Below are positions 3,409 to 58,688 of a stretch of DNA of 64,000 bases, piece after piece. The notes beneath the pieces were generated by a model. The model worked only from the letters and a program-made list of their open reading frames with translations, made no database searches and was not told the origin of the DNA. Both the position numbers and the translations under genes were made by a program. The stretch comes from Tubulanus polymorphus. Its lineage: Eukaryota; Animalia; Nemertea. The stretch lies in NCBI RefSeq assembly GCF_964204645.1, contig NC_134030.1:22900210-22964209 (forward strand). Direction: 5' to 3'. Positions within the stretch are counted from its first letter, which is position 1, and each line of letters begins with the position of its first letter.

Positions 3409-4404
3409 CTATCCGCCATGTTTACCAGCTGAGCCCACGCAGCTTAAAGCGCCAGCTCTGACATCGTTACGGAATGAACTGCTGCATATGAATATGAAAG
3501 CATTGATCCAGTGATTGATGCTGGCGATGTAGGCAGCAGCCAATTCCCCCAAACCCAAAAACATCGCGTAATTCTGATAAACACAGCTCGCCAAATAGAA
3601 ATCGTACGTTTCCACAAGACTCCCTTTCTCGAACAACAGGAGATAGATGAGGCCTTTTAGAAACGACAAGAAGAAAAAAGCGACCGATGTAGAAACGACT
3701 AAAACTGTGATCTTTTTCGCGGCTGCCTTTTTCTTATCGTCTGCACCCTGTTGGTTTGACATATTCGCCGAGCCGCGAACCCCGTATATGATCGCCCCGT
3801 TAGCGATGGCCATCACGAATATCGGTAGATATATATCCATGATATTGTTGTAATGGAAATACCACAAGTAGACAGTGACGTAAGGTATGCGACAGTTTGT
3901 GACCGTTCCGTTCATGATGTCCCGTCCTTCGAATAGCGCCGACCAGACGAGCTGGATTATGATCAGTACAGCACTCGTAACGGCTATCGCTCGCTTAGCT
4001 CTACCTACAGTGCACAGAGTGGCAGCTTGAAGAGGTTTAGAAACGGCTACAGCGCGATCAACCGTCATCAGAACCAAGATCCAAACAGCTATCTGTTTCG
4101 GGCAGATAGTATGAAACGCTTTGATGATACAACCAGCGCGATTCGATTTGATACGATACATGTCAATCAAATGCGTTACCGAGATACAGACCATCGCGTA
4201 CAAGTCAGCCCCGCCCAGAAATAACATGTAGAAATGACCGGCACTGGATGGCGCTTTTTTGTACGTCCCGAAAGCGATCAGAACCAAACCGATCAAACTC
4301 AATATCGGGTACGAATAATCTAAGGCGTACATCAATGGATTCAGGAAATACATCATCCAACTCATGTCAGCGGGTTGACAACTTCCGGTTTTGTTTCCTA
4401 CCAT
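3409..4404 (-). CDS. Orphan rhodopsin-like (class A) GPCR, 331 aa, single coding exon; divergent FMRFamide-receptor-like / putative chemoreceptor
   Basis: Seven hydrophobic segments; TM2 LGGADL; Cys at the top of TM3; LMTVDRAVAVSKPL (DRY-type); ECL2 Cys; TM5 YLP..AN; TM7 INHWINAFIF; helix 8 SSFR; N-terminal NKT sequon. Splice acceptor (TTTTCACATTCAACAG) 6 nt upstream of the ATG. Confidence 0.93.
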   Translation of the reverse strand: MVGNKTGSCQPADMSWMMYFLNPLMYALDYSYPILSLIGLVLIAFGTYKKAPSSAGHFYMLFLGGADLYAMVCISVTHLIDMYRIKSNRAGCIIKAFHTICPKQIAVWILVLMTVDRAVAVSKPLQAATLCTVGRAKRAIAVTSAVLIIIQLVWSALFEGRDIMNGTVTNCRIPYVTVYLWYFHYNNIMDIYLPIFVMAIANGAIIYGVRGSANMSNQQGADDKKKAAAKKITVLVVSTSVAFFFLSFLKGLIYLLLFEKGSLVETYDFYLASCVYQNYAMFLGLGELAAAYIASINHWINAFIFICSSSFRNDVRAGALSCVGSAGKHGG

Positions 4405-8818: not shown

Positions 8819-9095
8819 TTTCGGGGTCCCTCAAAATTATCTGTCGAGATATTACTGGAGTGCGACAGCAGCTGACAGAAACTGATATCAATAAAATTGA
8901 TTTTTTCATCGAACTTTGAGATCAAATTATGGATCCTGTAACCTCTATGTACTTAATTTTCATCTCTAACATTTCTACACCTGAATTAAAAAGAAAAATG
9001 GGAATTTAACATATCAAGTTCGTTAAATGTTTTCAAATATTTGCATGTACGAAATCCACAGTAAGAACCCAGTCCCATATAGATGTGAGTTGGAC

Positions 9096-12000
9096 AACTG
9101 TGGAACTGGATCCAGAACTGTGAAACTGGATCCAGAACTGTGAAACTGAGTCCAGAACTGTGAAACTGAGTCCAGAACTGTAGAACTGAGTCCAGAACTG
9201 TAGAACTGGATCCAGAACTGTAGAACTGGATCCTGAACTGTAGAACTGAGTCCAGAACTGTAGAACTGAGTCCAGAACTGTGAAACTGAGTCCAGAACTG
9301 TAGAACTGAGTCCAGAACTGTAGAACTGAGTCCAGAACTGTAGAACTGAGTCCAGAACTGTAGAACTGAGTCCAGAACTGTAGAACTGAGTCCAGAACTG
9401 TAGAACTGGATCCAGAACTGTAGAACTGAGTCCAGAACTGTAGAACTGAGTCCAGAACTGTAGAACTGAGTCCAGAACTGTGAAACTGGATCCAGAACTG
9501 TGGAACTGAGTCCAGAACTGTAGAACTGAGTCCAGAACTGTAGAACTGAGTCCAGAACTGTAGAACTGAGTCCAGAACTGTGAAACTGGATCCAGAACTG
9601 TGGAACTGAGTCCAGAACTGTAGAACTGAGTCCAGAACTGTAGAACTGGATCCAGAACTGTAGAACTGAGTCCATAACTGTGAAACTGAGTCAAGAACTG
9701 TAGAACTGAGTCCAGAACTGTAGAACTGGATCCAGAACTGTAGAACTGGATCCTGAACTGTAGAACTGAGTCCAAAACTGTAGAACTGAGTCCAGAACTG
9801 TAAAACTGGATCCAGAACTGTAGAACTGAGTCCAGAACTGTAGAACTGAGTCCAGAACTGTGAAACTGAGTCCAGAACTGTAGAACTAAGTCCAAAACTG
9901 TGAAACTGAGTCCAGAACTGTAGAACTGAGTCCAGAACTGTAGAACTGGATCCAGAACTGTAGAACTGGATCCTGAACTGTAGAACTGAGACCAGAACTG
10001 TAGAACTGAGTCCAGAACTGTAAAACTGGATCCAGAACTGTAGAACTGAGTCCAGAACTGTAGAACTGAGTCCAGAACTGTGAAACTGAGTCCAGAACTG
10101 TAGAACTAAGTCCAAAACTGTAGAACTGAGTCCAGAACTGTAGAACTGAGTCCAGAACTGTAGAACTGGATCCAGAACTGTAGAACTGAGTCCAGAACTG
10201 TAGAACTCAGTCCAGAACTGTAGAACTGAGTCCAGAACTGTGAAACTGGATCCAGAACTGTGGAACTGAGTCCAGAACTGTAGAACTGAGTCCAGAACTG
10301 TAGAACTGGATCCAGAACTGTAGAACTGAGTCCATAACTGTGAAACTGAGTCAAGAACTGTAGAACTGAGTCCACAACTGTAGAACTGGATCCTGAACTG
10401 TAGAACTGGATCCTGAACTGTAGAACTGGATCCAGAACTGTAGAACTGAGTCCAGAACTGTAGAACTGGATCCAGAACTGTAGAACTGGATCCAGAACTG
10501 TAGAACTGAGTCCAGAACTGTAGAACTGGATCCTGAACTGTAGAACTGAGTCCAGATGTGTAAAACTGAGTCCAGAACTGTAGAACTGAGTCCACAACTG
10601 CAGAACTGAGTCCACAACTGTAGAACTGGATCCTGAACTGTAGAACTGGATCCTGAACTGTAGAACTGGATCCAGAACTGTAGAACTGAGTCCAGAACTG
10701 TAGAACTGGATCCAGAACTGTAGAACTGGATCCAGAACTGTAGAACTGAGTCCAGAACTGTGAAACTGAGTCCAGAACTGTAGAACTGAGCCCAAAACTG
10801 TAGAACTGGATCCTGAACTGTAGAACTGAGTCCAGAACTGTAGAACTGGATCCTGAACTGTAGAACTGAGTCCAGAACTGTAGAACTGGATCCAGAACTG
10901 TAGAACTGGATCCAGAACTGTAGAACTGAGTCCAGAACTGTGAAACTGAGTCCAGAACTGTAGAACTGAGTCCAAAACTGTAGAACTGGATCCTGAACTG
11001 TAGAACTGAGTCCAGAACTGTAGAACTGGATCCTGAACTGTAGAACTGAGTCCAGAACTGTAGAACTGAGTCCAGAACTGTAGAACTGGATCCAGAACTG
11101 TAGAACTGAGTCCAGAACTGTAGAACTGGATCCAGAACTGTAGAACTGGATCCAGAACTGTAGAACTGAGTCCAGAACTGTAGAACTGGATCCAGAACTG
11201 TAGAACTGAGTCCAGAACTGTAGAACTGGATCCAGAACTGTAGAATTGGATCCAGAACTGTAGAACTGAGTCCAGAACTGTAGAACTGAGTCCAAAACTG
11301 TAGAACTGGATCCAGAACTGTAGAACTGAGTCCAGAACTGTAGAACTGGATCCAGAACTGTAGAACTGAGTCCAGAACTGTAGAACTGAGTCCAGAACTG
11401 TGAAACTGAGTCCAGAACTGTAGAACTGGACCCAGAACTGTAGAACTGGACCCAACTGTAGATCTGGGTTCAGAACTGTGGAACTGGGTTCAGAACTGTG
11501 GAACTGGGTTCAGAACTGGGGAACTGAGTTCAGAACTGTGGAACTGGGTTCAGAACTATGGGCCTGGGATCAGAACTATAGAACTGGACCCAGAACTGTA
11601 GAACTGGACCCAGAACTGTAGAAATGAGTCCAGAACTGTAGAACTGGGTTCAGAACTGTGAAACTGAGTGCAGAACAGTGAAACTGGATTCAGAACTGTA
11701 GAACTGGGTTCATAACTGTGGAACTGGGTTCAGAACTGTGGAACTGGGTTCAGAACTGAGGAACTGAGTTCAGAACTGTGGAACTGGGTTCAGAACTGTG
11801 GAACTGGGTTCAGAACTGTGGAACTGGGTTCAGAACTATGGGCCTGGGATCAGAACTATAGAACTGGACCCAGAACTGTAGAACTGGACCCAGAACTGTA
11901 GAAATGAGTTCAAAACTGTGGAACTGAGTGCAGAACAGTGAAACTGGATTCAGAACTGTAGAACTGGGTTCATAACTGTGGAACTGGGTTCAGAACTGTG

Positions 12001-15000
12001 GAACTGGGTTCAGAACTATGGAACTGGGTTCAGAACTGTGGAACTGGGTTCAGAACTGTGGAACTGGGTCCAGAACTATGGAACTGGGATCAGAACTGTA
12101 GAACTGGATCCAGAACTGTAGAACTGAGTCCAGAACTGTAGAACTGGATTCAGAACTGTAGAACTGAGTCCTGAACTGTGAAACTGAGTCCAGAACTGTA
12201 GAACTGGATCCCGAACTGTAGAACTGAGTCCAGAACTGTGAAACTGAGTCCAGAACTGTAGAACTGAGTCCACAACTGTAGAACTGGATCCTGAACTGTA
12301 GAACTGAGTCCAGAACTGTAGAACTGGATCCTGAACTGTAGAACTGAGTCCAGATGTGTAAAACTGAGTCCAGAACTGTAGAACTGAGTCCACAACTGCA
12401 GAACTGAGTCCAGAACTGTGAAACTGAGTCCAGAACTGTAGAACTGAGCCCAAAACTGTAGAACTGGATCCTGAACTGTAGAACTGAGTCCAGAACTGTA
12501 GAACTGGATCCTGAACTGTAGAACTGAGTCCAGAACTGTAGAACTGGATCCAGAACTGTAGAACTGGATCCAGAACTGTAGAACTGAGTCCAGAACTGTG
12601 AAACTGAGTCCAGAACTGTAGAACTGAGTCCAAAACTGTAGAACTGGATCCTGAACTGTAGAACTGAGTCCAGAACTGTAGAACTGGATCCTGAACTGTA
12701 GAACTGAGTCCAGAACTGTAGAACTGAGTCCAGAACTGTAGAACTGGATCCAGAACTGTAGAACTGAGTCCAGAACTGTAGAACTGGATCCAGAACTGTA
12801 GAACTGGATCCAGAACTGTAGAACTGAGTCCAGAACTGTAGAACTGGATCCAGAACTGTAGAACTGAGTCCAGAACTGTAGAACTGGATCCAGAACTGTA
12901 GAATTGGATCCAGAACTGTAGAACTGAGTCCAGAACTGTAGAACTGAGTCCAAAACTGTAGAACTGGATCCAGAACTGTAGAACTGAGTCCAGAACTGTA
13001 GAACTGGATCCAGAACTGTAGAACTGAGTCCAGAACTGTAGAACTGAGTCCAGAACTGTGAAACTGAGTCCAGAACTGTAGAACTGGACCCAGAACTGTA
13101 GAACTGGACCCAACTGTAGATCTGGGTTCAGAACTGTGGAACTGGGTTCAGAACTGTGGAACTGGGTTCAGAACTGGGGAACTGAGTTCAGAACTGTGGA
13201 ACTGGGTTCAGAACTATGGGCCTGGGATCAGAACTATAGAACTGGACCCAGAACTGTAGAACTGGACCCAGAACTGTAGAAATGAGTCCAGAACTGTAGA
13301 ACTGGGTTCAGAACTGTGAAACTGAGTGCAGAACAGTGAAACTGGATTCAGAACTGTAGAACTGGGTTCATAACTGTGGAACTGGGTTCAGAACTGTGGA
13401 ACTGGGTTCAGAACTGAGGAACTGAGTTCAGAACTGTGGAACTGGGTTCAGAACTGTGGAACTGGGTTCAGAACTGTGGAACTGGGTTCAGAACTATGGG
13501 CCTGGGATCAGAACTATAGAACTGGACCCAGAACTGTAGAACTGGACCCAGAACTGTAGAAATGAGTTCAAAACTGTGGAACTGAGTGCAGAACAGTGAA
13601 ACTGGATTCAGAACTGTAGAACTGGGTTCATAACTGTGGAACTGGGTTCAGAACTGTGGAACTGGGTTCAGAACTATGGAACTGGGTTCAGAACTGTGGA
13701 ACTGGGTTCAGAACTGTGGAACTGGGTCCAGAACTATGGAACTGGGATCAGAACTGTAGAACTGGATCCAGAACTGTAGAACTGAGTCCAGAACTGTAGA
13801 ACTGGATTCAGAACTGTAGAACTGAGTCCTGAACTGTGAAACTGAGTCCAGAACTGTAGAACTGGATCCCGAACTGTAGAACTGAGTCCAGAACTGTGAA
13901 ACTGAGTCCAGAACTGTAGAACTGAGTCCACAACTGTAGAACTGGATCCTGAACTGTAGAACTGAGTCCAGAACTGTAGAACTGGATCCTGAACTGTAGA
14001 ACTGAGTCCAGATGTGTAAAACTGAGTCCAGAACTGTAGAACTGAGTCCACAACTGCAGAACTGAGTCCAGAACTGTAGAACTGAGTCCAAAACTGTAGA
14101 ACTGGATCCTGAACTGTAGAACTGGATCCAGAACTGTAGAACTGAGTCCAGAACTGTAGAACTGGATCCAGAACTGTAGAACTGGATCCAGAACTGTAGA
14201 ACTGAGTCCAGAACTGTAGAACTGGATCCTGAACTGTAGAACTGAGTCCAGATGTGTGAAACTGAGTCCAGAACTGTAGAACTGAGTCCACAACTGTAGA
14301 ACTGGATCCTGAACTGTAGAACTGAGTCCAGAACTGTAGAACTGAGTCCAGAACTGTAGAACTGGATCCAGAACTGTAGAACTGAGTCCAAAACTGTAGA
14401 ACTGAGTCCAGAACTGTAGAACTGAGTCCAAAACTGTAGAACTGGATCCTGAACTGTAGAACTGGATCCAGAACTGTAGGACTGGATCCTGAACTGTGGA
14501 ACTGAGTCCAGAACTGTGGAACTGGATCCTGAACTGTAGAACTGAGTCCAGAACTGTAGAACTGAGTCCAGAACTGTAGAACTGGATCCAGAACTGTAGA
14601 ACTGAGTCCAAAACTGTAGAACTGAGTCCAGAACTGTAGAACTGAGTCCAAAACTGTAGAACTGGATCCTGAACTGTAGAACTGGATCCAGAACTGTAGA
14701 ACTGGATCCTGAACTGTGGAACTGAGTCCAGAACTGTGGAACTGAGTCCAGAACTGTAGAACTGGATCCAGAACTGTAGAACTGAGTCCTGAACTGTGAA
14801 ACTGAGTCCAGAACTGCAGAAATGGATCCAGAACCGTGGAACTGAGTCCTGAACTGTGAAACTGAGTCCAGAACTGTAGAACTGGATCCAGAACTGTAGA
14901 ACTGAGTCCAGAACTGTAGAACTGGATCCAGAACTGTAGAACTGGATCCAGAACTGTAGAACTGAGTCCAGAACTGTGAAACTGAGTCCAGAACTGTAGA

Positions 15001-18000
15001 ACTGAGTCCAAAACTGTAGAACTGGATCCTGAACTGTAGAACTGAGTCCAGAACTGTAGAACTGGATCCTGAACTGTAGAACTGAGTCCAGAACTGTAGA
15101 ACTGAGTCCAGAACTGTAGAACTGGATCCAGAACTGTAGAACTGAGTCCAGAACTGTAGAACTGGATCCAGAACTGTAGAATTGGATCCAGAACTGTAGA
15201 ACTGAGTCCAGAACTGTAGAACTGAGTCCAAAACTGTAGAACTGGATCCAGAACTGTAGAACTGAGTCCAGAACTGTAGAACTGGATCCAGAACTGTAGA
15301 ACTGAGTCCAGAACTGTAGAACTGAGTCCAGAACTGTGAAACTGAGTCCAGAACTGTAGAACTGGACCCAGAACTGTAGAACTGGACCCAACTGTAGATC
15401 TGGGTTCAGAACTGTGGAACTGGGTTCAGAACTGTGGAACTGGGTTCAGAACTGGGGAACTGAGTTCAGAACTGTGGAACTGGGTTCAGAACTATGGGCC
15501 TGGGATCAGAACTATAGAACTGGACCCAGAACTGTAGAACTGGACCCAGAACTGTAGAAATGAGTCCAGAACTGTAGAACTGGACCCAGAACTGTAGAAC
15601 TGGACCCAACTGTAGATCTGGGTTCAGAACTGTGGAACTGGGTTCAAAACTGTGGAACTGAGTGCAGAACAGTGAAACTGGATTCAGAACTGTAGAACTG
15701 GGTTCATAACTGTAGAACTGGACCAGAACTGTAGAACTTGGTTCAGAACTGTTGAACTGGGTTCAGAACTGAGGAACTGAGTTCAGAGCTGTGGAACTGG
15801 GTTCAGAACTATGGAACTGGGTTCAGAACTGTGGAACTGGGTTCAGAACTGTGGAACTGGGTTCAGAACTATGGAACAGGGATCAGAACTGTAGAACTGG
15901 ACCCAGAACTGTAGAACTGGGTTCAGAACTGTGGAACTGGGTTCAGAACTGTAGAACTGGACCCAAAACTGTAGAACTGGACCCAGAAGTGTGGAACTGG
16001 GTTCAACACTGTGGAACTGAGTGCAGAACAGTGAAACTGGATTCAGAACTGTGGAACTGGACCAAACTGTAGAACTGGGTTCAGAACTGTGGAACTCGGC
16101 ACAGAACTGTGGAACTGGATACAGAACTGTGGAACTGGGTTCACAACTATGGAACTGGGTTCAGAACTGTGGAACTGAGTGCAAAACTGTGAAACTGAGT
16201 TCAGAACTGTGGAACTGGGTTCAGAACTATGGAACTGGGTTCAGAACTATAGAACTTGACCCAGAACTGTAGAAATGAGTTCAGAACTGTGGAACAGGGT
16301 TCAAAACTGTGGAACTGAGTGCAGAACAGTGAAACTGGATTCAGAACTGTAGAACTGAGTTCAAAACTGTAGAACTGGGTTCAGAACTGTAGAACTGGCC
16401 CAGAACTGTAGAACTGGGTTCAGAACTGTGGAACTGGGTTCCGAACTGTGGAACTGGGTTCAGAACTCCGGAACTGGGTTCAGAACTATGGAACTGGTTC
16501 AGAACTGTGGAACTGGGTTCAGAACTGTGGAACTGAGTGCAGAACTGTGAAACTGAGTTCAGAACTGTGGAACTGGGTTAAGAACTGTAGAACTGGGTGC
16601 AGAACAGTGAAACTGGGTTCAGAACTGTGAAACTGAGTTCAGAACTGTAGAAATGGGTTTAGAACTGTGGAACTGGGTTCAGAACTGTGGAACTGTGTCC
16701 AGAACTGAAAAACTGGACCCAGAACTGTGGAAATGGGTTCAGAACTGTAGAACTGGACCCAGAACTGTAGAACTGGACCCAGAACTGTGGAACTGGGTTC
16801 AAAACTGTGGAACTGAGTGCAGAACAGTGAAACTGGATTCAGAACTGTGGAACTGGGTTCAGAACTATAGAACTGGACCCAGAACTGTGGAACTGTGTCC
16901 AGAACTGTGGAACTGGACCCAGAACTGAGGAACTGGGTTCAGAACTGTAGAACTGGACCCAGAACTGTAGAACTGGACCCGGAACTGTGGAACAGGGTTC
17001 AGAACTGTAGAACTGGACCCAGAAATGTGGAAATGGGTTCAGAACTGTAGAACTGGACCCAGAACTGCAGAACTAGACCCAACTGTAGAACTGAGCGCAG
17101 AACTGTGGAACTGAGTGCAGAACCGTGTAACTGGATTCAGAACTGTGGAACTGGGTTCAGAACTGTAGAACTAGACCCAACTGTAGAACTGGGTGCAGAA
17201 CAGTGAAACTGGGTTCAGAACTGTGAAACTGAGTTCAGAACTGTAGAAATGGGTTTAGAACTGTGGAACTGGGTTCAGAACTTTGGAAATTGGTTCAGAA
17301 CTGTGGAACTGAGTTCAAAACTCTTGAACTGGGTTCAGAACTATAGAACTGGACCCAGAACTGTGGAACTGTGTCCAGAACTGTGGAACTGTGTCCAGAA
17401 CTGTGGAACTGGACCCAGAACTGTGGAACTGGGTTCAGAACTGTAGAACTGGACCCAGAACTGCAGAACTAGACCCAACTGTAGAACTGAGTGCAGAACT
17501 GTGGAACTGAGTGCAGAACAGTGAAACTGGATTCAGAACTGTGGAACTGGGTTCAGAACTGTAGAACTGGACCCAGAACTGCAGAACTAGACCCAACTGT
17601 AGAACTGAGTGCAGAACTGTGGAACTGAGTGCAGAACAGTGAAACTGGATTCAGAACTGTGGAACTGGGTTCAGAACTGTAGAACTAGACCCAGAACTGC
17701 AGAACTAGACCCAACTGTAGAACTGAGTGCAGAACTGTGGAACTGAGTGCAGAACAGTGAAACTGGATTCAGAACTGTGGAACTGGGTTCAGAACTGTAG
17801 AACTGGACCCAGAACTGCAGAACTAGACCCAACTGTAGAACTGGGTGCAGAACAGTGAAACTGGGTTCAGAACTGTGAAACTGAGTTCAGAACTATAGAA
17901 ATGAGTTCAGAACTGTGGAACTGAGTGCAGAACTGTGGAACTGGATCCAGAACTGTGGAACTGGGCACAGAACTGTAGAACTGGACCCAGAACTGTGGAA

Positions 18001-18261
18001 CTGGGTTCAAAACTGTGGAACTGGGTTCAGAGCTGTGGAACTAGGTTCAGAACTGTGGAACTGGGTTCAGAACTGTGAAACTGGACCCTGAACTGTTGAA
18101 CTGGGTTCAGAACTGTGGAACTGAGTTCAGAACAGTGGCACTGGGTTCAGAATTGTGAAACTGGACCCAGAACAGTGGAACTGGGTTCAGAACTGTGAAA
18201 CTGGACCCTGAACTGTTGAACTGGGTTCAGAACTGTGGAACTGAGTGCAGAACTGTGGAAA
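9096..18261 (+). repeat. 9.2-kb satellite of about 460 20-bp monomers with two subtypes and higher-order repeats
   Basis: Subtype A is CAGAACTGTAGAACTG(AGT/GAT)C and subtype B is CAGAACTGTGGAACTGGGTT. Diagnostic variant CCCAACTGTAGATCTGGG at 11451, 13109, 15387 and 15605. Confidence 0.99.
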
Positions 18262-18652: not shown

Positions 18653-18731
18653 TAACTGTCGAACTGGATCCCGAATCGTGAAACCGGATCCCGAATCGTT
18701 GAACTGGATCCAGAATCGTGGAACTGGGTCT
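18653..18731 (+). repeat. Degenerate 20-bp satellite units (about 4)
   Basis: GAACTGGATCCCGAATCGTG-type monomers. Confidence 0.8.
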
Positions 18732-21183: not shown

Positions 21184-22383
21184 TCACAAGTAAGTCTGCG
21201 GTCCGTTCGTTATTCTGAGCGATGTTTGCCGATGAGCCGGACTACGCGCCGGACTACTATCGACACCGTTACGCTCGTGGCTATCCGGCCGTAACAATTT
21301 AGCCGGCGACGTGCTGCCCTCTGTCGTCGTTTTAGCGAACGCGCACCTGCAGCCGAACAATTCGTAAAACGTATCTCGAAACATCGAACTGAACGTGTAA
21401 TAAAGAATGAAATTGACGGCGCTATTTATCGCCAGTAACAGATCGGTGAATTCGCGGATTCCTCGCACCAGGGGGTTAGCGTCGTAATAACCGAGTTTAA
21501 AAAACGACATAATAGCGTCGGGAGTGATACAAATTAGGAAGATAATTACAACAGCGATCAACATCATCGTAATTCTGTTTCTGGAAGACTGTTGTTTACC
21601 TTTGATACGCGACTGAAACAGGGCGTAGATAATCAACGAATTTAGAATCGCCAGAACGAAAAGAGGTATGATCGAACGCAGTAAGTTTTGCACCCACATG
21701 TACGCCGTGATGAACAGTTGATTGCGACCCAGTTCCGTCGGTTCCACTTCCCAGCAAGTTTGATTCGTGATGTTCGAGATTTTGAGAACTCGTTGGTATC
21801 TCAGTCCGCTGGGTATGGCTAGTACAGCCATAAGTATGAACACGGACGCCGAGACGATGCGGGCTCGCTGTATCGTGCATAAAGTGATCGCCCGAGTCGG
21901 ATGACAAACACTGATATACCTCTCCGCCGAGACAGACACCGTCAACCAAGCCGTTATACAAACCGCCATATTGAATATATAATGAGCAAACGGATATAGA
22001 AGCGTTAAAGCGCGGTTTCCGGTTTTGGTATCGTATTGATCGATGGCTAATACGAGGAAATACATGAAATCGGTGACGAGTTTAATCAGGTCGGATACGG
22101 ACAGCGCCGACAGGAACACGTTAGTCGATGTGGCCATCTTCTTCCGACTGAGAACCACTAAACTCAACGCGTTACCCGTTATACCCAGGATAGTAACAAT
22201 CGGGTAGGATACTAATCCGGTGGCATACCGCGCCCCCTGGTAGAACGATTCGTATTGATCGTTTGGATTAACGCCGGTGGCGACGTCTGGTGGCCGGTTC
22301 TGATTACCGAGATGTTGGTTCAGTATTTTGCTGATGTATGTTTTGTTATCGATCGAATGCTCGATCACTTTGTACGGTTCCAT
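21184..22383 (-). CDS. FMRFamide-receptor-like class A neuropeptide GPCR, 399 aa, single coding exon
   Basis: TM1 GITGN; TM2 LSVSDL; TM3 WLTVSVSAERYISVCHP; ECL2 NITNQTC; TM5 IIPL..LN; TM6 FLICITP; TM7 INSAVNFILY; helix 8 FRDTF; Cys palmitoylation site and Ser/Thr-rich tail. Acceptor TTTTCAG at 22408-22414, 24 nt upstream of the ATG. Confidence 0.95.
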   Translation of the reverse strand: MEPYKVIEHSIDNKTYISKILNQHLGNQNRPPDVATGVNPNDQYESFYQGARYATGLVSYPIVTILGITGNALSLVVLSRKKMATSTNVFLSALSVSDLIKLVTDFMYFLVLAIDQYDTKTGNRALTLLYPFAHYIFNMAVCITAWLTVSVSAERYISVCHPTRAITLCTIQRARIVSASVFILMAVLAIPSGLRYQRVLKISNITNQTCWEVEPTELGRNQLFITAYMWVQNLLRSIIPLFVLAILNSLIIYALFQSRIKGKQQSSRNRITMMLIAVVIIFLICITPDAIMSFFKLGYYDANPLVRGIREFTDLLLAINSAVNFILYYTFSSMFRDTFYELFGCRCAFAKTTTEGSTSPAKLLRPDSHERNGVDSSPARSPAHRQTSLRITNGPQTYL

Positions 22384-26684: not shown

Positions 26685-28272
26685 CGCGTGCGGAGAGGCG
26701 CGGCGGGCACGAGGTCTCGCGTGCGGAGAGGCGCGGCGGGCACGAGGTCTCGCGTCCGGAGAGACGCGGCGGGCACGAGGTCTCGTGGCCGGAGAGGCGC
26801 GGCGGGCACGAGGTCTCGCGTGCGGAGAGGCGCGGCGGGCACGAGGTCTCGCGTCCGGAGTGGCGCGGCGGGCACGAGGTCTCGCGTCCGGAGTGGCGCG
26901 GCGGGCACGAGGTCTCGCGTCCGGAGAGACGCGGCGGGCACGAGGTCTCGCGTCCGGAGTGGCGCGGCGGGCACGAGGTCTCGCGTGCGGAGTGGCGCGG
27001 CGGGCACGAGGTCTCGCGTGCGGAGAGACGCGGCGGGCACGAGGTCTCGCGTCCAGAGAGACGCGGTGGGCACGAGGTCTCGTGGCCGGAGAGGCGCGGC
27101 GGGCACGAGGTCTCGCGTCCGGAGAGGCGCGGCGGGCACGAGGTCTCGCGTCCGGAGAGGCGCGGCGGGCACGAGGTCTCGCGTGCGGAGAGGCGCGGCG
27201 GGCACGAGGTCTCGCGTGCGGAGAGACGCGGCGGGCACGAGGTCTCGCGTGCGGAGAGGCGCGGTGGGCACGAGGTCTCGCGTGCGGAGTGGCGCGGCGG
27301 GCACGAGGTCTCGCGTGCGGAGAGGCGCGGCGGGCACGAGGTCTCGCGTCCAGAGAGACGCGGTGGGCACGAGGTCTCGTGGCCGGAGAGGCACGGCGGG
27401 CACGAGGTCTCGCGTCCGGAGAGGCGCGGCGGGCACGAGGTCTCGCGTCCGGAGAGGCGCGGCGGGCACGAGGTCTCGCGTCCGGAGAGACGCGGTGGGC
27501 ACGAGGACTCGCGTGCGGAGTGGCGCGGCGGGCACGAGGTCTCGCGTCCGGAGTGGCGCGGCGGGCACGAGGTCTCGCGTGCGGAGAGACGCGGTGGGCA
27601 CGAGGACTCGCGTGCGGAGAGGCGCGGCGGGCACGAGGACTCGCGTCCGGAGAGGCGCGGCGGGCACGAGGTCTCGCGTCCGGAGAGGCGCGGCGGGCAC
27701 GAGGTCTCGCGTGCGGAGTGGCGCGGCGGGCACGAGGTCTCGCGTGCGGAGAGGCGCGGCGGGCACGAGGTCTCGCGTCCGGAGAGGCGCGGCGGGCACG
27801 AGGTCTCGCGTGCGGAGTGGCGCGGCGGGCACGAGGTCTCGCGTCCGGAGAGGCGCGGCGGGCACGAGGTCTCGCGTGCGGAGAGGCGCGGCGGGCACGA
27901 GGTCTCGCGTCCGGAGTGGCGCGGCGGGCACGAGGTCTCGCGTGCGGAGAGGCGCGGCGGGCACGAGGTCTCGCGTCCGGAGTGGCGCGGCGGGCACGAG
28001 GTCTCGCGTGCGGAGAGGCGCGGCGGGCACGAGGTCTCGCGTCCGGAGAGGCGCGGCGGGCACGAGGTCTCGCGTGCGGAGTGGCGCGGCGGGCACGAGG
28101 TCTCGCGTGCGGAGTGGCGCGGCGGGCACGAGGTCTCGCGTGCGGAGTGGCGCGGCGGGCACGAGGTCTCGCGTCCGGAGTGGCGCGGCGGGCACGAGGT
28201 CTCGCGTGCGGAGAGACGCGGTGGGCACGAGGTCTCGCGTGCGGAGAGGCGCGGCGGGCACGAGGTCTCGCG
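26685..28272. repeat. 33-bp GC/CpG-rich minisatellite, about 48 copies
   Basis: CGCGT(G/C)CGGAG(A/T)GGCGCGGCGGGCACGAGGTCT, with no indels seen. Confidence 0.99.
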
Positions 28273-28773
28273 CCGGCCGGTCATCAATCTAACTTTGTGC
28301 CGCGATGGACGAAAAGGAAGAAAAAACTATTTGCGTCGGGATCATTAAACATCGATTTGAAACTAATCAATATTGAGTCGGACACGCGGCCAGAACCTCA
28401 TCTTCATTAGACAATATAGAGACAGCTAACAGACAGCCAACAGACAGTTAAGGCTTCCGATAACCTTACCGGTTTCATTTCCCGCCATCAATCACGTGTT
28501 CGATCTGATCGCGGTCACGTGACTCGATACCGGAAGTGGACGGTGAGAGTGACCGGACGGAGTTTTTCTGTAAGAACGCGATGTTTTGATTTTTGTTCGA
28601 GGGTCAACACCGGACATGGGACGTAATCCAGTTCTGAATCCAGTTTGTCTCAGATCGCGGTTTGCTATCAGATAATTTGCTCGATACACGTCGATTAAGA
28701 TTCATGTTATTCTTTGAAGTTGATTTGTTGTAACCGTACGGGTCCGGTGTTTATTAACTTGAGCCACTGTATA

Positions 28774-29043
28774 ATGGGTTCAGAACGTGTAACTGACTCT
28801 TGAACTGTGGAACTGAGTTGTGAGTTGCGAAACTGGATCTTAAACGGTGGAACTGAGACCCCAACTGGTTATAGAACTGTGGAACTGAGTCCATAAGTGT
28901 GGAACGAATGCCAGACGAACTGTGGAACTGAGTCCAGAACTGTGGAACTGAATCCATAACTGTGGAACAAATGCCAGACGAACTGTGGAACTGAATCCAT
29001 AACTGTGGAACAAATGCCAGACGAACTGTGGAACTGAGTCCTG
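28774..29043 (+). repeat. Dispersed 20-bp satellite family cluster with a compound ~42-bp variant
   Basis: AACTGTGGAACTGA(G/A)TCCAT alternating with AACTGTGGAACAAATGCCAGACG. Confidence 0.85.
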
Positions 29044-33227: not shown

Positions 33228-33318
33228 ATAGGAAGACTCCGATAAGCTTCTGAACCGATAGGAAGACTCCGATAAGCTTCTGAACCCATAGGAAGACTCC
33301 GATAAGCTTATGAACCCA
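33228..33318. repeat. 30-bp repeat x3
   Basis: ATAGGAAGACTCCGATAAGCTTCTGAACC(G/C). Confidence 0.9.
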
Positions 33319-33339
33319 GTTCTTACGTCGTTCGGGACC

Positions 33340-33593
33340 CTGGAGCTGTGGAATTGAGTCCTTAACTGTGGAACTCGATCCACACCAAGTTCCACAGGTT
33401 AGGACTGGTAGAACTATAATTTCAGAACTGTAGAACTATAATTTCAGAACTGTGGAACTTAGTTCAAAACTGTGGAACTTAGGATACAGGACTGTGGAAC
33501 TGGATTCAGGACTGTGTGGAACTAGATACAGAACTGTGGAACTGGATACAGAACTGTGGAACTGAGTCCAGTAACTGTGGAACTGGATCCAGG
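33340..33593 (+). repeat. Degenerate 20-bp satellite family cluster
   Basis: AACTGTGGAACTGGAT(A/C)CAG units, plus one inverted unit (CCAAGTTCCACAG, about 33385). Confidence 0.85.
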
Positions 33594-34559
33594 ACAGAGT
33601 AAAACTGTAACGTGAGCTGTCAGATCAGATCTCAGTGAAGGACACGTCAGTTTTATGACTGATGATTAATTGATTCAATGTTTATGAACTAATCGCATTA
33701 TCATAGAACTGATGTTTGTCTCTGGTCATGTTAAATCCTGCTGCTGACCGTTATTAGATTGTCTAAACAGTGATATATTGACTCCACTGGTCGACAGCGC
33801 GCAGCCGCGGCCACGCACGTACAATCAGCGTGCAGTCTCTCATCACCGGGTTAGTTATTATTACACACAGTTTGATGGCTCCATTTACACATGATCTGTG
33901 TCTAATTTCAACAATCAAATGAGACCCAATTTGTTAAAATCAGTGGTGATCAGTGCGCAGACTCGTGACGTCATCCGTGCATGAATGATTACCTGTCAAA
34001 AATTTGACTAATTCGACCCTCAGATGAACTACTATTGAACACCCCGACCCCCCAACCCCGACCCCCCACCCCCGTGTTAAGCGAGGTGAAAATGTGGGAC
34101 TCGAACCCAAATCAACTGGCTACACCGATCCGAAGTAGGTTAAGCGTTTTTGTTGAAAATTCGGAACTCGAACCCAAATAAACTGGCTACACCTATCCCG
34201 ATACTCGTCTATATTTCAATGTTTCATCAACGAACTGAACTAATTACCTAACACGTGATCAGTCGAGTGTGCGTATTAATCTACCCGAGTTTAGAACTAT
34301 TTTCCGGAAGCTCGCCTGCGCGGCGCGTTCACGCCGGAAGTCGCGAGTAATCATAGAAATTTTTGCTTCGTCGAATTCAACGCTCCTCTAATTCGTAATA
34401 TCGCGCGAACTAAACACGTATCGGTACTACCGAGCTGGTATGTAGAGCAGCTGCTAGTCACGTGTTCATACTATTCCTGACTACACACAAATGACGATGA
34501 TGAAATTTGGTTCTATTTGGTTCTATTTGATTCTATTTATTAGCCCGGATCTACGGTTC

Positions 34560-44517: not shown

Positions 44518-47021
44518 ATACCCTACAACAATATATCCATACAACTACCTCCATATATCCCCACAACTACCTCAATATATCCCCACAACTACCTCTATAT
44601 ATCCTCACAACTACCTCCATATATCCTCACAACTACCTCCATAAATCCTCACAACTACCTCCATATATCCTCACAACTACCTCCATATATCCCTACAACT
44701 ACCTCCATATATCCCTACAACTACCTCCATATATCCCCACAACTACCTCCATATATCCCCACAACTACCTCCATATATCCCCACAACTACCTCAATATAT
44801 CCCCACAACTACCTCCATATATCCCCACAACTACCTCCATATATCCCTACAACTACCTCCATATATCCCTACAACTACCTCCATATATCCCCACAACTAC
44901 CTCCATATATCCTCACAACTACCTCCATATATCCTCACAACTACCTCCATATATCCCCACAACTACCTCCATATATCCCCACAACTACCTCCATATATCC
45001 CTACAACTACCTCCATATATCCCTACAACTACCTCCATATATCCCCACAACTACCTCCATATATCCCCACAACTACCTCCATATATCCTCACAACTACCT
45101 CCATATATCCCTACAACTACCTCCATATATCCCTACAACTACCTCCATATATCCCCACAACTACCTCCATATATCCCCACAACTACCTCCACATATCCTC
45201 ACAACTACCTCCATATATCCCTACAACTACCTCCATATATCCCCACAACTACCTCCATAAATCCTCACAACTACCTCCATATATCCTCACAACTACCTCC
45301 ATATATCCTCACAACTACCTCCATATATCCCCACAACTACCTCAATATATCCCCACAACTACCTCCATATATCCCTACAACTACCTCCATATATCCCCAC
45401 AACTACCTCCACATATCCCCACAACTACCTCCATATATCCTCACAACTACCTCCATATATCCCCACAACTACCTCTATATATCCTCACAACTACCTCCAT
45501 ATATCCTCACAACTACCTCCATATATCCCCACAACTACCTCCATATATCCCCACAACTACCTCCACATATCCTCACAACTACCTCCATATATCCCTACAA
45601 CTACCTCCATATATCCCCACAACTACCTCCATAAATCCTCACAACTACCTCCATATATCCTCACAACTACCTCCATATATCCTCACAACTACCTCCATAT
45701 ATCCCCACAACTACCTCAATATATCCCCACAACTACCTCCATATATCCCTACAACTACCTCCATATATCCCCACAACTACCTCCACATATCCCCACAACT
45801 ACCTCCATATATCCTCACAACTACCTCCATATATCCCCACAACTACCTCTATATATCCTCACAACTACCTCCATATATCCCCACAACTACCTCCATATAT
45901 CCTCACAACTACCTCCATAAATCCTCACAACTACCTCCATATATCCCCACAACTACCTCTATATATCCTCACAACTACCTCCATAAATCCTCACAACTAC
46001 CTCCATATATCCTCACAACTACCTCCATATATCCTCACAACTACCTCCATATATCCCTACAACTACCTCCATATATCCCCACAACTACCTCCACATATCC
46101 CCACAACTACCTCCACATATCCCCACAACTACCTCCATATATCCTCACAACTACCTCCATATATCCCTACAACTACCTCCATATATCCTCACAACTACCT
46201 CCACATATCCCCACAACTACCTCCATATATCCTCACAACTACCTCCATATATCCCCACAACTACCTCCATATATCCCCACAACTACCTCCACATATCCCC
46301 ACAACTACCTCCATATATCCCCACAACTACCTCTATATATCCCCACAACTACCTCCATATATCCTCACAACTACCTCCATAAATCCTCACAACTACCTCC
46401 ATATATCCTCACAACTACCTCCATATATCCTCACAACTACCTCCATATATCCCCACAACTACCTCCATAAATCCTCACAACTACCTCCATATATCCTCAC
46501 AACTACCTCCATATATCCTCACAACTACCTCCATATATCCCCACAACTACCTCCATATATCCTCACAACTACCTCCATATATCCCTACAACTACCTCCAT
46601 ATATCCCTACAACTACCTCCATATATCCCTACAACTACCTCCATATATCCCCACAACTACCTCCATATATCCCTACAACTACCTCCATATATCCCCACAA
46701 CTACCTCAATATATCCCCACAACTACCTCCATATATCCCCACAACTACCTCAATATATCCCCACAACTACCTCTATATATCCTCACAACTACCTCCATAA
46801 ATCCTCACAACTACCTCCATATATCCTCACAACTACCTCCATATATCCTCACAACTACCTCCATATATCCCTACAACTACCTCCATATATCCCCACAACT
46901 ACCTCCACATATCCCTACAACTACCTCCATATATCCTCACAACTACCTCCATATATCCCTACAACTACCTCCATATATCCTCACAACTACCTCAATATAT
47001 CCCCACAACTACCTCCATATA
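44518..47021. repeat. 22-bp satellite, about 114 copies
   Basis: ACAACTACCTCCATATATCC(CC/TC/CT); no G seen on the + strand. Confidence 0.99.
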
Positions 47022-50078: not shown

Positions 50079-50330
50079 TGGTCACCGGTTGCCACACTTG
50101 ACTGGTCACGAGTCACCACACTGACCACACAAACTAGCTATCACTGCCAATCACTACTCGTCTATGGTCTAGTGGTTAGTGTGCTCGGCTGACGTGCCTT
50201 GGGTCGCAGGTTCGAGTCCTGTTAGGGTTAGGGTTACGGGTGACCTGGGGGTTTCAGTCGAGCTAGGGTTAGGGTTACAGGCGACCTAGGGTTACGGCTG
50301 AGCCTAGAGATAGGGTAATTGAGAAACTAG
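50079..50330 (+). mobile_element. tRNA-like interspersed element with TTAGGG repeats (copy 2)
   Basis: Leader shared with 29634 (GACCACACAAACT). A-box at 50165-50175, B-box at 50209-50219, followed by TTAGGGTTAGGGTTA blocks. Confidence 0.7.
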
Positions 50331-50658: not shown

Positions 50659-50796
50659 GGGCCAGTTGCATAGTCATGGCTTAGACTTAAGACCATTTTA
50701 ATACAAACTTAGTTCTATAGCTAACCTAACAACTTAAGACCAGTCTTAAGATTTAAGACCACTTTTGGACTTAAGTCCCGACTGTACAACTGGCCC
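50659..50796 (+). mobile_element. PIF/Harbinger-type MITE, 138 bp
   Basis: TIR GGGCCAGTTGCATAGTC / GACTGTACAACTGGCCC, with an exact 3-bp TSD CAG at 50656-50658 and 50797-50799. Confidence 0.9.
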
Positions 50797-51204: not shown

Positions 51205-51463
51205 TGGTCTTAAACTGAAGACCAGTCTAAGCTGATTTTGGTTCTATAACCAATCTATCAACTTCAGTCTAAACTCATTCTGGTTCCATAATAAATCTAT
51301 CAACTTAAGACCAGCCTAAGCTAATTTGGTTCTATAGACAATTTAAAAACTTAAGACCAGTCTGAACTCATTCTGGTTCTATAGACAATCTAACTACTTA
51401 AGACCAGTCTAAACTCATTTTGGTTCTATAACCAATCTAACAACTTAAGACCAGTCTAAACTT
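51205..51463 (+). repeat. About 47-bp tandem array homologous to the MITE interior, about 5.5 copies
   Basis: AACTTAAGACCAGTCTAAACTCATTTTGGTTCTATAACCAATCTAAC. Confidence 0.88.
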
Positions 51464-52995: not shown

Positions 52996-53801
52996 ACTAG
53001 CTGTTATTCCAATTAACAGTTGACAGGTTTAAGTATGATTGGCAGCTGTAGGGTTTCAATTAATCAAATCTACCAAATTAATCCTATTACATTTTAATTA
53101 ATTTCTCTTTGTAATTAATTGCTTTGAGGTGTTTGTCACTTTGTGTTAATACAATGTAATCAAGTATGAAGTTTGATAAGGTCAAACAGGTCAATCGAAC
53201 CGAACAAACAACCGAGTCCGGGTAACTTGTGAAACTCTGTAAAAACATTAAACCTTTTATCTCAACACTTTCAATATTTTTATGTCACTGTAAAAAATGA
53301 GTTTATATTGCCAGTACGGTATGTCTGCTGCTGCTGCTGCTGCCGCTGCCGATGCCGCTGCCACTGCCACTGCCGCTTCTGATGCCGATCTGTCCCAGTC
53401 TCTGATAGGAGTTTATCGAGTGTTAATAGCACGGATCTGATGTGGTTTTAACTTGTCGGTAGCTGTTGATTACTCTTGGTGTATCATGGGCAGCGGGGAT
53501 GGATATCATCACCTACAGATACATCCAGCATCCAGTAACACATCCTCCGGCTACTGACTGATTGTCAGCGGCGACAATAGCAGTAGATGATGCTTTAATG
53601 CCAATATGGCCGCAAGGCAGCAGTCGACAGAGGAATAAACTCAACGCGACATTAGAATGTTCTAGTTGAGGTCAGAGCGCGATACGATTCATTGAACATC
53701 TCTGAGAATATTGCAGAATTCACCAGAGAAAATAGTTTGAATCGGAAAAACATTTTATATTGTCTAAATAACTCTCACGGGAAACGTTTTATGGGAATCT
53801 G

Positions 53802-53992
53802 GATCCAGTTCGTCAGTTCTGAGATAAATGTGACTCTAGAGATAAATATTGAATATGAACTGATTTCAATTCAGAGTTAACTCTAAGTCACAACTGTGAA
53901 ACTGGATCCAGAGTTCAGAGATAGCTCTAACTCACAACTGTGGAACTGGGTCCTGAGTTCACAGTTAACTCTCACACTGTGGAACTGGGCCC
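53802..53992. mobile_element. 107-bp MITE (53802-53908) whose TIR equals the 20-bp satellite monomer, followed by two tandem duplicates of its right end
   Basis: CTG|GATCCAGTTCGTCAGTT ... AACTGTGAAACTGGATC|CAG, then ..CTCACAACTGTGGAACTGGGTC|CTG and ..CTCACACTGTGGAACTGGGCC|CCG. Confidence 0.75.
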
Positions 53993-54963
53993 CGAATATT
54001 ATATCTGTGACTGCAGTAGCGATATCTAGGACTCTGTGGCACCGCGGAATTCAATCAAAAAATCTGTTCAGCAAAAAGTTGTACTGATTCATATATATAT
54101 TGTACCTGATGAATTGACAGTTGTATGGACCCCCACCGCCCCTCCGCCCCTCCACCCCTCCACCCTTCCGCCCTTCCGCCCCCCTGTATGATCCCCTCCA
54201 GGTGTAACCATCACAAGCAAACAGACACGGTCCCGCATCAGCAGCCGCCGCTGGCTATCGTACACTGGTTTATTGAAGCGAGGGAACAGGTAGCTAATTA
54301 TCCATCGTCTTCTAAACTACACGACGAAGAACGAACGGTTCCGGTTCCGGTTGTGACGGCCTTGGGTCAAAACAGCGGTCGTCATAATTACCGCGCGAAA
54401 CCGACTCAATTCGCATTGATGTCACGTGACTGAGCACGCTGACAGTATTCACGATGATACGAGACTCCATGTGTGCGTGGTGGTGTGCGTGGTGCGTGCG
54501 TGGCTGCGTGCCATGGCTCTGTCCATCGCCCTTTTAAAAAACTTCCGAAAGATCAAAAGGCTGTCCATTTAACAGAGAAAAGACTAATCCAACATGGCGG
54601 ACAGGTGACTTCCTAATCTCTCATCGCCCATAATGCACAGCTCAGACCGGAACTTCCTTGAAAGGCGCCTCGACATTTAGACAGGCCAGGTCATTAGATA
54701 GAAATAAATGTTCTCAGAAAGATCTCTTGTTATTTTGTTATTCTATCATCATTTCTCCGGCCATATCCAACCGCACGATTTGGAGTCGTTACCCAATGTA
54801 GGTGTAGGAGTTCAGTGGGTTCGAATCCCATATTTTGCCGGTAACGCGCTCGGTTATCTGTAATTGGATACGGTGAGGTTTTTGAGTAGATATCGCGGTC
54901 AATAAAATCGAACAGAAATTCGTACGAAATGATTCTATTTTTTACGAAATCAATTTATTTGTA

Positions 54964-58525: not shown

Positions 58526-58688
58526 CAGGACTGTGGAACTGGTTGCAGAACTGTGGAACTGGATCCAGAACTGTGGTACTGGGTCCAGAACTGTGGAACT
58601 TGATACAGAATTGTGGAACTAGGTCCAGAACTGTGGAACTGGGCCCTGAACTGTGGAAATGGGCCCTGAACTGCGGAACTGGGTCCAT
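58526..58688 (+). repeat. 20-bp satellite family, about 8 units
   Basis: CAGAACTGTGGAACTGG(AT/GT/GC)C. Confidence 0.93.

Follow-up and report, generated by a model that had tools for sequence, protein, structure and literature searches.

A 9-kb satellite array in the nemertean Tubulanus polymorphus probably derived from one end of a Harbinger-type MITE

Introduction

Terminal inverted repeats (TIRs) of transposable elements are a common source of satellite units (PMC9659126; PMC12628747). A stretch of 64,000 nucleotides from the Tubulanus polymorphus genome (hereafter the window), located on a 23.04-Mb contig at a distance of 80–144 kb from its end, contains a 9-kb array of a 20-bp repeat, which raises the question of where such an array comes from and, if a transposon was involved, whether the element or the satellite existed first. 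A sequence-only reading of the window had interpreted the array as the tandemly amplified end of a MITE together with its flanking trinucleotide. The analysis presented here supports this interpretation in its main points. The 9-kb array is probably a satellite that arose from one end of a non-autonomous, NuwaI-type PIF/Harbinger MITE of approximately 108 bp, which is abundant and was recently active in this genome.

Results

Structure of the 9-kb array

TRF analysis of the 64-kb window reported 9096–18260 (forward strand) as one array with a period of 20, 459.5 copies and 85% matches. Our own parse of the same interval gave 460 units in 99 variants, and both results agree with the approximately 460-fold array at about 9065–18261 that had been recognized from the sequence alone. 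The distance between units was exactly 20 bp in 433 of 453 cases, the others being units of 18–19 bp or 40-bp steps comprising two units. The array is not interrupted, and the mean similarity among its units is approximately 84%. A degenerate 20-mer matched 485 times in the window, compared with 0.03 matches expected from shuffled sequence. The most frequent unit is AACTGTAGAACTGAGTCCAG with 86 copies and the consensus is AACTGTAGAACTGGGTCCAG; the unit quoted earlier, AACTGTGGAACTGGATCCAG, does occur there, though only rarely. That the monomer carries either CAG or CTG was seen correctly, with A at position 19 in 405 and T in 36 units.

The segment 10704–12451 (1748 bp) recurs at +1658 bp with 99.3% identity, the segment 11043–11667 recurs at +3936 with 98.1% identity, and a 118-bp higher-order repeat is present at 17393–17866. 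As the 1748-bp duplicate is 99.3% identical while single units average 84%, the array has grown by blocks, and these block duplications are recent. No gradient of unit divergence from ancestral to derived was found along the array. On the right, the array breaks off within a unit and lacks a canonical terminus. The 9.2-kb array offers 460 potential CWG targets and contains no insertion.

The unit corresponds to a MITE end and its insertion footprint

A comparison of the array consensus with the consensus of 20 young MITE copies showed that the 17 outermost bp of the right inverted end of the MITE, in right-end orientation, and the following 3 bp (CWG) together make up the unit. All 20 of 20 positions correspond, which bears out the proposed parse of the monomer into MITE end and CWG flank. 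The MITE is about 108 bp long and non-coding; in the consensus of the 20 young copies its arms are complementary over approximately the first 24 bp and partly beyond, and the whole element folds as a hairpin. The consensus TIR begins with GGT, with GAT and GAC as variants. Searching the 268-Mb genome gave 1652 first-look candidates for this family, a number that represents a lower bound like all our genome-wide counts; about 85 loci were read. Forty scored copies, distributed over all large contigs, were 93–95% identical to the query, so that a multi-copy family with these termini does exist. Sampled copies share 91–99% identity with their own consensus, and the sequences flanking the dispersed copies are unrelated. 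The family is abundant and was recently active.

Within the window, an old copy of the MITE is located at 53802–53991 (forward strand). Its basic element of 107 bp (53802–53908), flanked by CTG at 53799–53801 and CAG at 53909–53911, is identical to the family consensus at 95 of 114 positions (83%). The ends of this element had been placed correctly, but its continuation was missed: after 53908 there are two more tandem units, 53912–53955 (44 bp) and 53956–53994 (39 bp), each composed of spacer, 17-bp end and trinucleotide. A second MITE family with a related TIR is represented at 50659–50796 (forward strand), with CAG on both sides as target duplication. Its TIR starts with GGG and is identical to the consensus TIR of the 108-bp family at 13 of 16 positions; the 12 of 16 matches noted before for the satellite monomer are correct as well. 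The 47-bp arrays at 51213–51462 and 62982–63290 derive from the interior of this second element.

CWG is a target-site duplication

Flanking trinucleotides were identical in 12 of the 20 young MITE copies, including a non-canonical AAG/AAG pair. CAG or CTG was found at 32 of 40 flanks, and 11 of the 14 young copies with CWG on both sides had the same W on either side. Two empty sites could be reconstructed. One copy (L099) is inserted in a tRNA-Thr(UGU)-like gene, whose 5-bp anticodon stem is restored only when a single CTG is kept; another resides in a tandem repeat, of which another unit carries a single CTG. The tRNA argument is based on a cloverleaf that was recognized in the sequence by eye. 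As the stretch analysed does not include the final bases of the acceptor stem, ARAGORN made no call on the reconstructed tRNA, and the match to the Rfam tRNA model was sub-threshold. The matching flanks of young copies together with the two reconstructed empty sites indicate that the CWG adjoining the 17-bp end represents a genuine duplication of 3 bp of target sequence, as had been assumed. In older, array-bearing copies we found no direct repeat of 2–9 bp at any offset; the flanking CWG was equal in only 6 of 20, and the match was not above chance (4/14). The terminal unit of these copies therefore no longer carries the original footprint. Taken alone, the older copies would have spoken against the footprint idea; the young single copies speak for it.

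The NuwaI group of the PHIS (PIF/Harbinger-ISL2EU-Spy) superfamily is characterized by a 3-bp duplication of 5′-CWG-3′ and by TIRs that usually start with GGG and measure 12–61 bp (PMC4482050). As our MITE combines a CWG duplication with TIRs starting with GG, its assignment to the CWG-targeting, NuwaI-type branch of PIF/Harbinger appears reasonable, and with it the earlier label ‘Harbinger-type’. It shares with NuwaI the 3-bp CWG duplication, a TIR length within 12–61 bp, an animal host and, with a consensus beginning with GGT, the GG of the usual GGG start; it differs in that we have only non-autonomous copies and in that nemerteans are absent from the hosts listed in PMC4482050. Assignments to hAT or Helitron elements were rejected, there being no 8-bp duplication and no TC...CTRR ends. 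The same applies to the foldback type (FB, Galileo, Tetris), since in all loci read the arrays lie on only one side of an asymmetric interior.

An autonomous Harbinger with the same TIR, for which the sequence-only reading proposed to look, did not emerge: no element combining this TIR with a DDE transposase and a Myb/SANT protein was found among the termini and TIR sites read. The genome contains at least 150 DDE_Tnp_4 matches. None of the termini of five readable Harbinger families, determined from the breaks in copy-to-copy similarity, resembles the TIR of the MITE. Likewise, neither the 39 perfect GGTCC-type TIR sites whose neighbouring sequence is not that of the MITE nor the first 100 of 379 sites matching a broader TIR pattern are located near a DDE_Tnp_4 or Plant_tran match. 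Copies sharing the terminus occur at intervals of approximately 12 kb at C10:13.96-14.17 Mb. Three candidates were discarded. A TIR-like motif in one Harbinger family (L034, L036, L038) is internal and lacks an inverted partner, and the similarity runs past it. Two perfect TIRs in inverted orientation, separated by 7.75 kb (C2:4565454-4573207), enclose no DDE_Tnp_4 or Plant_tran match. Finally, the best transposase match (L031) is preceded at a distance of 1 kb by a CAG-GGCCAGTT site, but its locus contains no inverted partner of this site.

Intermediates between MITE and satellite

Most of 30 loci showed the layout left TIR, 92 bp and n units of 44 bp (n = 1 to 28). The 44- and 37-bp units consist of contiguous subterminal MITE sequence, the 17-mer and CTG. 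Units of 17, 21, 24, 26 and 30 bp all contain the 17-mer, and the same 17-mer is kept throughout in arrays with units of 17 to 37 bp. At two loci (L069, L071) left TIR and interior are followed by units of 20 bp. Many arrays stop at a CWG boundary and not in mid-unit, and three array-bearing copies with 44-bp units have matching CTG/CTG flanks. Among 40 ends of young copies, 7 showed the configuration CAG-17 bp-CAG or CTG-17 bp-CTG. Two of the 20 young copies (L084, L093) are positioned precisely at the footprint of another CWG-type MITE, with a CAG in common, and one MITE copy (L086) is joined head-to-head with a copy of its own family. A head-to-tail tandem of full-length elements (113-bp period) was not observed in any locus read.

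The region 9065–9093 (forward strand), which adjoins the 9-kb array, had been described as an inverted left end. It is probably a degenerate left TIR of the MITE family with the subterminal TGTGAGTT, with approximately 60 bp of MITE interior missing. In a local alignment, the left arm of the consensus matched 9069–9091 in inverted orientation at 19 of 23 columns with one 2-nt gap, covering TIR positions 4–24; the match is modest, as 21 of 4090 control tiles of 55 bp (0.5%) and 1.4% of those of 130 bp scored as well. A left TIR also directly abuts the array at two further loci (L081, L083). Among independent 20-bp arrays an inverted partner is enriched on the 5′ side (6 of approximately 28, compared with 1.4% of control tiles), although about 70–80% of the 20-bp arrays have no recognizable partner; the pairing of arrays with an inverted copy is more frequent than by chance but not systematic.

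Other arrays and their genomic location

The window contains further arrays of the 20-mer. A short array of about 26 units at 547–1065 has the opposite orientation (reverse strand) and no recognizable inverted partner. The others are on the forward strand: a degenerate array of 3.3 units at 18661–18727, 400 bp past the main array; short arrays with higher-order units of 43/63 bp at 28783–29041; a short array with units of 20/42 bp at 33313–33597, preceded by inverted TIR-like copies at approximately 33313 and 33385; and an eight-unit array without inverted partner at 58525–58687. Genome-wide, 4032 junction matches of the 20-bp repeat were counted as a lower bound, and none for a control pattern. 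Among the first 100 listed matches, 88 were located within 1.4 Mb of a contig end. The 20-bp repeat hence occurs throughout the genome and is concentrated near contig ends.

Discussion

Origin and growth of the array

A trinucleotide derived from the target is part of every unit, and longer units reach into unique MITE sequence. The footprint inside each unit and the inward extension of the 44- and 37-bp units argue that the element came first, and the direction thus appears to run from element to satellite. The following course can be envisaged. The first tandem copy of end and footprint would have been produced by slippage or break repair involving the footprint and a second copy of its trinucleotide immediately internal to the 17-bp end, an arrangement that some ends of young copies already have. 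Unequal exchange of multi-unit blocks may then have enlarged the array, a process that would be favoured by the recombination-prone, repeat-rich chromosome end. Meanwhile, the left end would have decayed and the right terminus would have been lost.

Seeding might also have occurred by repeated insertion, in which a second element lands in the CWG footprint of a resident copy, forming a tandem with a common footprint that is then reduced to 44 or 20 bp by internal deletion and multiplied by unequal exchange. Such insertions are conceivable since the duplicated target is itself a preferred target, and this route would account naturally for the footprint inside every unit. Double insertion at a duplicated target is a published route to transposon tandems (PMC12628747; PMC9659126), and the two copies sharing a CAG with another CWG-type MITE, as well as the head-to-head copy, fit this route. 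On the other hand, the expected head-to-tail tandems of full elements with a 113-bp period occurred in no locus read, and each of the many unit lengths would need an additional precise deletion, so that we regard this route as rather unlikely. It is less probable still that a subtelomeric 20-bp repeat pre-existed and supplied the MITE with its ends, for instance through a transposase that came to use satellite units as termini. The abundance of the repeat and the lack of any other MITE part in most arrays fit such an origin, and the Xenopus MITE miDNA4 has been proposed to have captured tandem repeats that existed before it (PMC12628747). However, the last 3 bp of the unit are a target duplication that is host-derived in single copies, as seen from the empty sites in the tRNA and the tandem repeat and from the AAG/AAG pair; if the satellite were older, these 3 bp would fit the target preference of the element by chance in approximately 1/32 of cases. 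Moreover, the 44- and 37-bp units run inward into unique MITE sequence, and the related family at 50659 has a similar TIR yet no such satellite. A mere coincidental similarity between satellite unit and MITE end, for which only the shortness of the unit could be adduced, is practically negligible in view of 20 of 20 matching positions including the flank, graded intermediates and orientation-specific partners.

A different question is whether the multiplied ends were kept for a function, either improving mobilization by providing more transposase or Myb sites, or damping the family by soaking up transposase, or serving the host at its subtelomeres. Each unit represents a potential binding site for the transposase of the family or its Myb partner and a potential CWG target, as judged from its sequence. 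The 17-bp terminus is always kept across units of 17–44 bp with otherwise unrelated spacers, and the three 44-bp array-bearing copies with CTG/CTG flanks are compatible with movement as arrays. Expansion in place, however, predicts matching flanks equally well, the 460 potential targets have not received a single insertion, and units that are only 84% alike give no sign of constraint. We consider retention for function improbable; most likely, the 9-kb array is a by-product without host function. A more far-reaching proposal, to which we likewise attach little probability, is that the terminus itself is the object of amplification. Transposase cuts at the junction of end and footprint, or selection for extra binding sites, would then repeatedly yield end-plus-footprint units of many lengths, and array-bearing elements would stay mobile. 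An active Harbinger-type family could in this way keep producing and spreading subtelomeric satellite, and the arrays would feed back on transposition as decoy ends or as a transposase sink.

Comparison with known systems

The origin of the 9-kb array from a MITE end, which we favour, follows a transposon-end route to satellites that is already known; the array adds a clean case to it but no new principle. Its value lies in the coexistence of single-copy, few-copy and 460-copy stages in one genome, in which the source MITE is still young and abundant, and in a repeat unit of which every base can be assigned either to the transposon end or to the insertion footprint. Together, these stages and this parse make the element-first direction unusually clear. 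The 3-bp direct repeat that brackets the 17-bp end suggests a way of seeding that can be tested, and the CWG-targeting Harbinger branch and a nemertean join the list of satellite sources. Arrays have expanded mainly near chromosome ends, though the MITE itself is dispersed. For genome annotation, thousands of short ‘satellite’ matches are best regarded as parts or derivatives of one MITE family.

Several comparable cases have been described. In Xenopus, the Xmix MITE gave rise to the Xstir tandem repeats (Hikosaka and Kawahara, 2004, cited via PMC12628747 and PMC9659126); there, single MITEs, composites of MITE and array, and arrays alone also occur and the unit comes from the inverted-repeat region. 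Our unit is much shorter (17 bp of TIR and a 3-bp footprint), comes from one end only and from another superfamily, and its arrays lie near chromosome ends. In the Tc1/mariner MITE miDNA4 of Xenopus tropicalis (Scalvenzi and Pollet, cited via PMC12628747), repeat number varies within MITE copies as it does here, and MITEs carrying a long array have been proposed to turn into classical arrays that lack inverted ends, with microhomology invoked. The miDNA4 repeat lies in the interior of the element and is regarded as captured, whereas here the terminus itself is repeated and the footprint in each unit argues for the direction from transposon to satellite. Tandems formed by double insertion in Drosophila melanogaster (PMC12628747; PMC9659126) resemble our array in that the unit junction has the length and motif of the target-site duplication; they involve whole elements or large parts of them, in contrast to the 20-bp unit described here, for which no tandem of full elements was seen. 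Finally, tandem repeats from the inverted ends of the foldback transposon Tetris of Drosophila virilis also form independent long arrays, the TIR-220 satellite (PMC4079207). In Tetris both arms are built of repeats and the 220-bp unit is internal to the TIR, whereas in Tubulanus polymorphus only the right end is repeated and the unit consists of the terminus and its target duplication.

Turnover of the 9-kb array and its surroundings

The 20-bp satellite at 9096–18260 was reported by TRF as a single array (period 20, 459.5 copies). A parse anchored on the conserved core of the unit resolved it into 460 units in 99 variants, with the consensus AACTGTAGAACTGGGTCCAG. Spacing was exactly 20 bp in 433 of 453 cases; the remainder were units of 18–19 bp or 40-bp two-unit steps, where the anchor missed the intervening unit. 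Differences between units average 3.2 per 20 positions; the variable positions are 7, 14, 15 and 17, and at position 19 there are 405 units with A and 36 with T. No gradient of divergence was found along the array, and no foreign insertion anywhere within its 9.2 kb. A block at 10704–12451 is repeated 1658 bp downstream with 99.3% identity and is partly present a third time with 98.1% identity, and a 118-bp higher-order repeat was found in the right part of the array. These block duplications are very recent and point to growth of the array by exchange of multi-unit blocks; it is being remodelled in this way at present.

In the 267.8-Mb assembly (G000, 77 contigs) the window corresponds to G000:C6:22900210-22964209, 80–144 kb from the end of contig C6 (23,044,209 bp). 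Tandem repeats are dense in it (96 TRF rows). Two intronless open frames for rhodopsin-family GPCRs, both Srw-like and on the minus strand, flank the array on either side, at 3409–4404 (7tm_1, E 1.6e-18) and 21184–22383 (7tm_1, E 3.6e-28); the arrangement resembles a cluster of subtelomeric receptor genes with repeats in between. Other repeats of the window include a 33-bp minisatellite at 26685–28276 (48 copies, 93% alike), which forms a block of 65% G+C against a background of about 41%, a 22-bp satellite at 44531–47021 (113 copies, 94% alike) whose strand asymmetry is extreme (GC skew about −0.7), and a 92-bp satellite at 56780–57947 (12.7 copies, 95% alike). A short interstitial tract of TTAGGG-like telomere repeats, intermingled with a 23/41-bp repeat, lies at 50223–50316, roughly 90 kb away from the contig end.

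The unit is a MITE end plus its CWG footprint

A genome search with window 53790–54000 returned many matches (at least 165 among those listed), and 30 fetched loci showed a recurrent layout: an inverted copy of the unit, a direct copy 92 bp on and then 1 to 28 further direct copies spaced 44 bp. Using the left end and interior only, 1652 first-look candidates were obtained, 40 of which were scored; these had 93–95% identity and were on all large contigs. Twenty of the 40 were fetched and aligned (hereafter young single copies) and proved to be single 108-bp elements, 91–99% identical to their own consensus. The element starts with G[G/A][T/C]CCAGTTCCACAGTT and finishes with its complement; complementarity of the arms extends over about 24 bp from the ends and in part further inward, and the asymmetric interior gives the element an orientation. 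The hairpin of one copy (L099, 48–167) gave sub-threshold matches to several plant microRNA precursor models (45–47 bits, gathering thresholds 74–100), themselves MITE-like hairpins; this is a structural resemblance only. The window copy at 53802–53908, followed by two extra units up to 53991, is 83% identical to the consensus and is an old family member.

Flanking trinucleotides were identical in 12 of the 20 young single copies: CTG/CTG nine times (counting L086, whose head-to-head junction is ambiguous), CAG/CAG twice and AAG/AAG once. Where CWG was present on both sides, the W was the same in 11 of 14 copies. At L099 (G000:C9:2712960-2713160) the element splits a tRNA-Thr(UGU)-like gene in the anticodon stem; only when the element is taken out together with one CTG, leaving the other in place, does the sequence regain a 5-bp stem and a perfect cloverleaf. 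At a further locus, L085, the element interrupts a tandem repeat, the intact units of which carry a single CTG. Identical flanks and these two empty sites thus indicate that CWG is a 3-bp target duplication made by the MITE. The parse of the 20-bp unit proposed in the sequence-only reading, into a 17-bp transposon end and CWG, is therefore exact to the base. In the first sample, which comprised older array-bearing copies, CWG matched between the two sides no more often than by chance, as would be expected if homogenisation overwrites the terminal unit. Han et al. (2015, PMC4482050) define the NuwaI group of the PIF/Harbinger (PHIS) superfamily by its CWG duplication; the group occurs in animals, and its TIRs mostly begin with GGG.

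Intermediates between element and satellite

The 17-bp end recurs in units of several lengths. The 44-bp unit consists of four bases, 20 bp of contiguous subterminal MITE sequence, the 17-bp end and CTG, in that order, and the 37-bp unit of 17 bp of subterminal sequence, the end and a trinucleotide. Arrays with 17-bp units contain the end only, and those with units of 21, 24, 26 and 30 bp combine end and trinucleotide with an unrelated spacer.

Several of the 20 independent 20-bp arrays that were retrieved from three contigs retain the left TIR at the 5′ side: two (L069, L071) have left TIR and MITE interior ahead of the 20-bp units, and in two others (L081, L083) the left TIR directly adjoins the array, as in the window. 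By local alignment, an upstream inverted partner was detected in 6 of about 28 independent arrays compared with 1.4% of control tiles; such partners are enriched, although the pairing is not systematic. The two downstream partner matches are left ends of neighbouring elements. The degenerate inverted left end described earlier in front of the 9-kb array does align to the left TIR at 9069–9091, but the match is modest, and MITE interior is absent at that edge. Many 20-bp arrays stop cleanly at the CWG boundary; the right edge of the 9-kb array falls inside a unit. In this series from MITE to array, the 9-kb array stands at the far end.

Genomic distribution and search for an autonomous partner

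A pattern across the junction of 20-bp units matched the genome 4032 times (reversed control, 0). Among the first 100 matches, on C1 to C4, 88 are no more than 1.4 Mb away from a contig end; at the level of arrays the figure is 31 of 38. The 44-bp array-bearing copies showed the same bias among the matches listed, whereas single elements are spread more evenly (among the 40 scored) and Harbinger transposase matches lie in contig centres (among those listed). This contrast is indicative only.

No autonomous partner with the TIR of the MITE family was found among five Harbinger families and the listed perfect-end sites. The five families were rejected as source, since their termini, read from similarity breaks between copies, differ from the MITE TIR; flanks are ANT-like (Pangu type) in one and TWA in another. 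A perfect 17-bp end with non-MITE neighbouring sequence occurs at 379 sites, 39 of which have a GGTCC start; no transposase match was seen near these 39 or near the first 100 of the 379. At 17 of these sites the perfect end continues with GTTGA where the MITE has GTGAG (G000:C10:13961596-13986049, minus strand; 14122088-14169442, plus strand; and 11 other places); among them are triplets spaced about 12 kb near the end of C10. They may represent a larger relative or a segmental repeat that shares this end. Nine loci (L052–L060) on seven contigs (C1–C4, C7, C8) carry a Harbinger-type family whose open frame is 400 aa long. At least nine of its copies are 100% identical over 3.3 kb, and its activity seems to be very recent; the family terminates in ...GAGCCCC with ATT or AAT next to it, an ANT-like flank (Pangu type).

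Seeding and growth of the array

At 7 of the 40 ends in young copies, the 17-bp end has the same trinucleotide on its inner side as the footprint on its outer side, and hence a proto-repeat of 1.15 units exists already. One slippage or misaligned repair event could convert it into a dimer, and source ends reading ...CAG, 17 bp, CAG are consistent with the CAG predominance of 20-bp arrays. Alternatively, a second element could have inserted into the footprint of the first. Insertions of this kind do occur next to other elements: two of the 20 young copies (L084, C5:20.11 Mb; L093, C6:21.33 Mb) have CAG in common with a different CWG-type MITE, and one of the 20 adjoins a unit of its own family. 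However, a tandem of full elements, the product of such an event within the family, was not seen in the loci read. The MITEs beside or around L084, L093 and L094 (C3:24.99 Mb) have GGGCCAGTTGC-like ends and, where adjoining, a CAG footprint in common, which suggests a common target preference and frequent landing beside resident elements. Expansion would proceed by unequal exchange in the distal chromosome while the solitary left end decays, a path proposed for other MITE-borne repeats (PMC12628747).

The window holds a second, independent conversion of a MITE into tandem repeats. The 138-bp CWG-type element at 50659–50796 (TIR 16/20 complementary, CAG/CAG footprint) already contains 1.4 copies of an approximately 47-bp unit in its interior, and tandem arrays of this unit lie at 51213–51462 (5.4 copies) and 62982–63290 (6.6 copies).

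TIRs and other repeated transposon parts are given in reviews as the commonest source of satellite units (PMC9659126, PMC12628747). Known examples are Xstir from the Xmix MITE and TIR-220 from Tetris (PMC9659126, PMC12628747, PMC4079207), and known paths include a MITE with a growing internal array and double insertion at a duplicated target (PMC9659126, PMC12628747). The present array belongs with these TIR-derived satellites. It is characterised by its minimal unit of terminus plus footprint, by the several unit lengths built around one 17-mer, by its one-sided amplification, by its CWG-targeting Harbinger-type source, by its nemertean host and by its subtelomeric bias.
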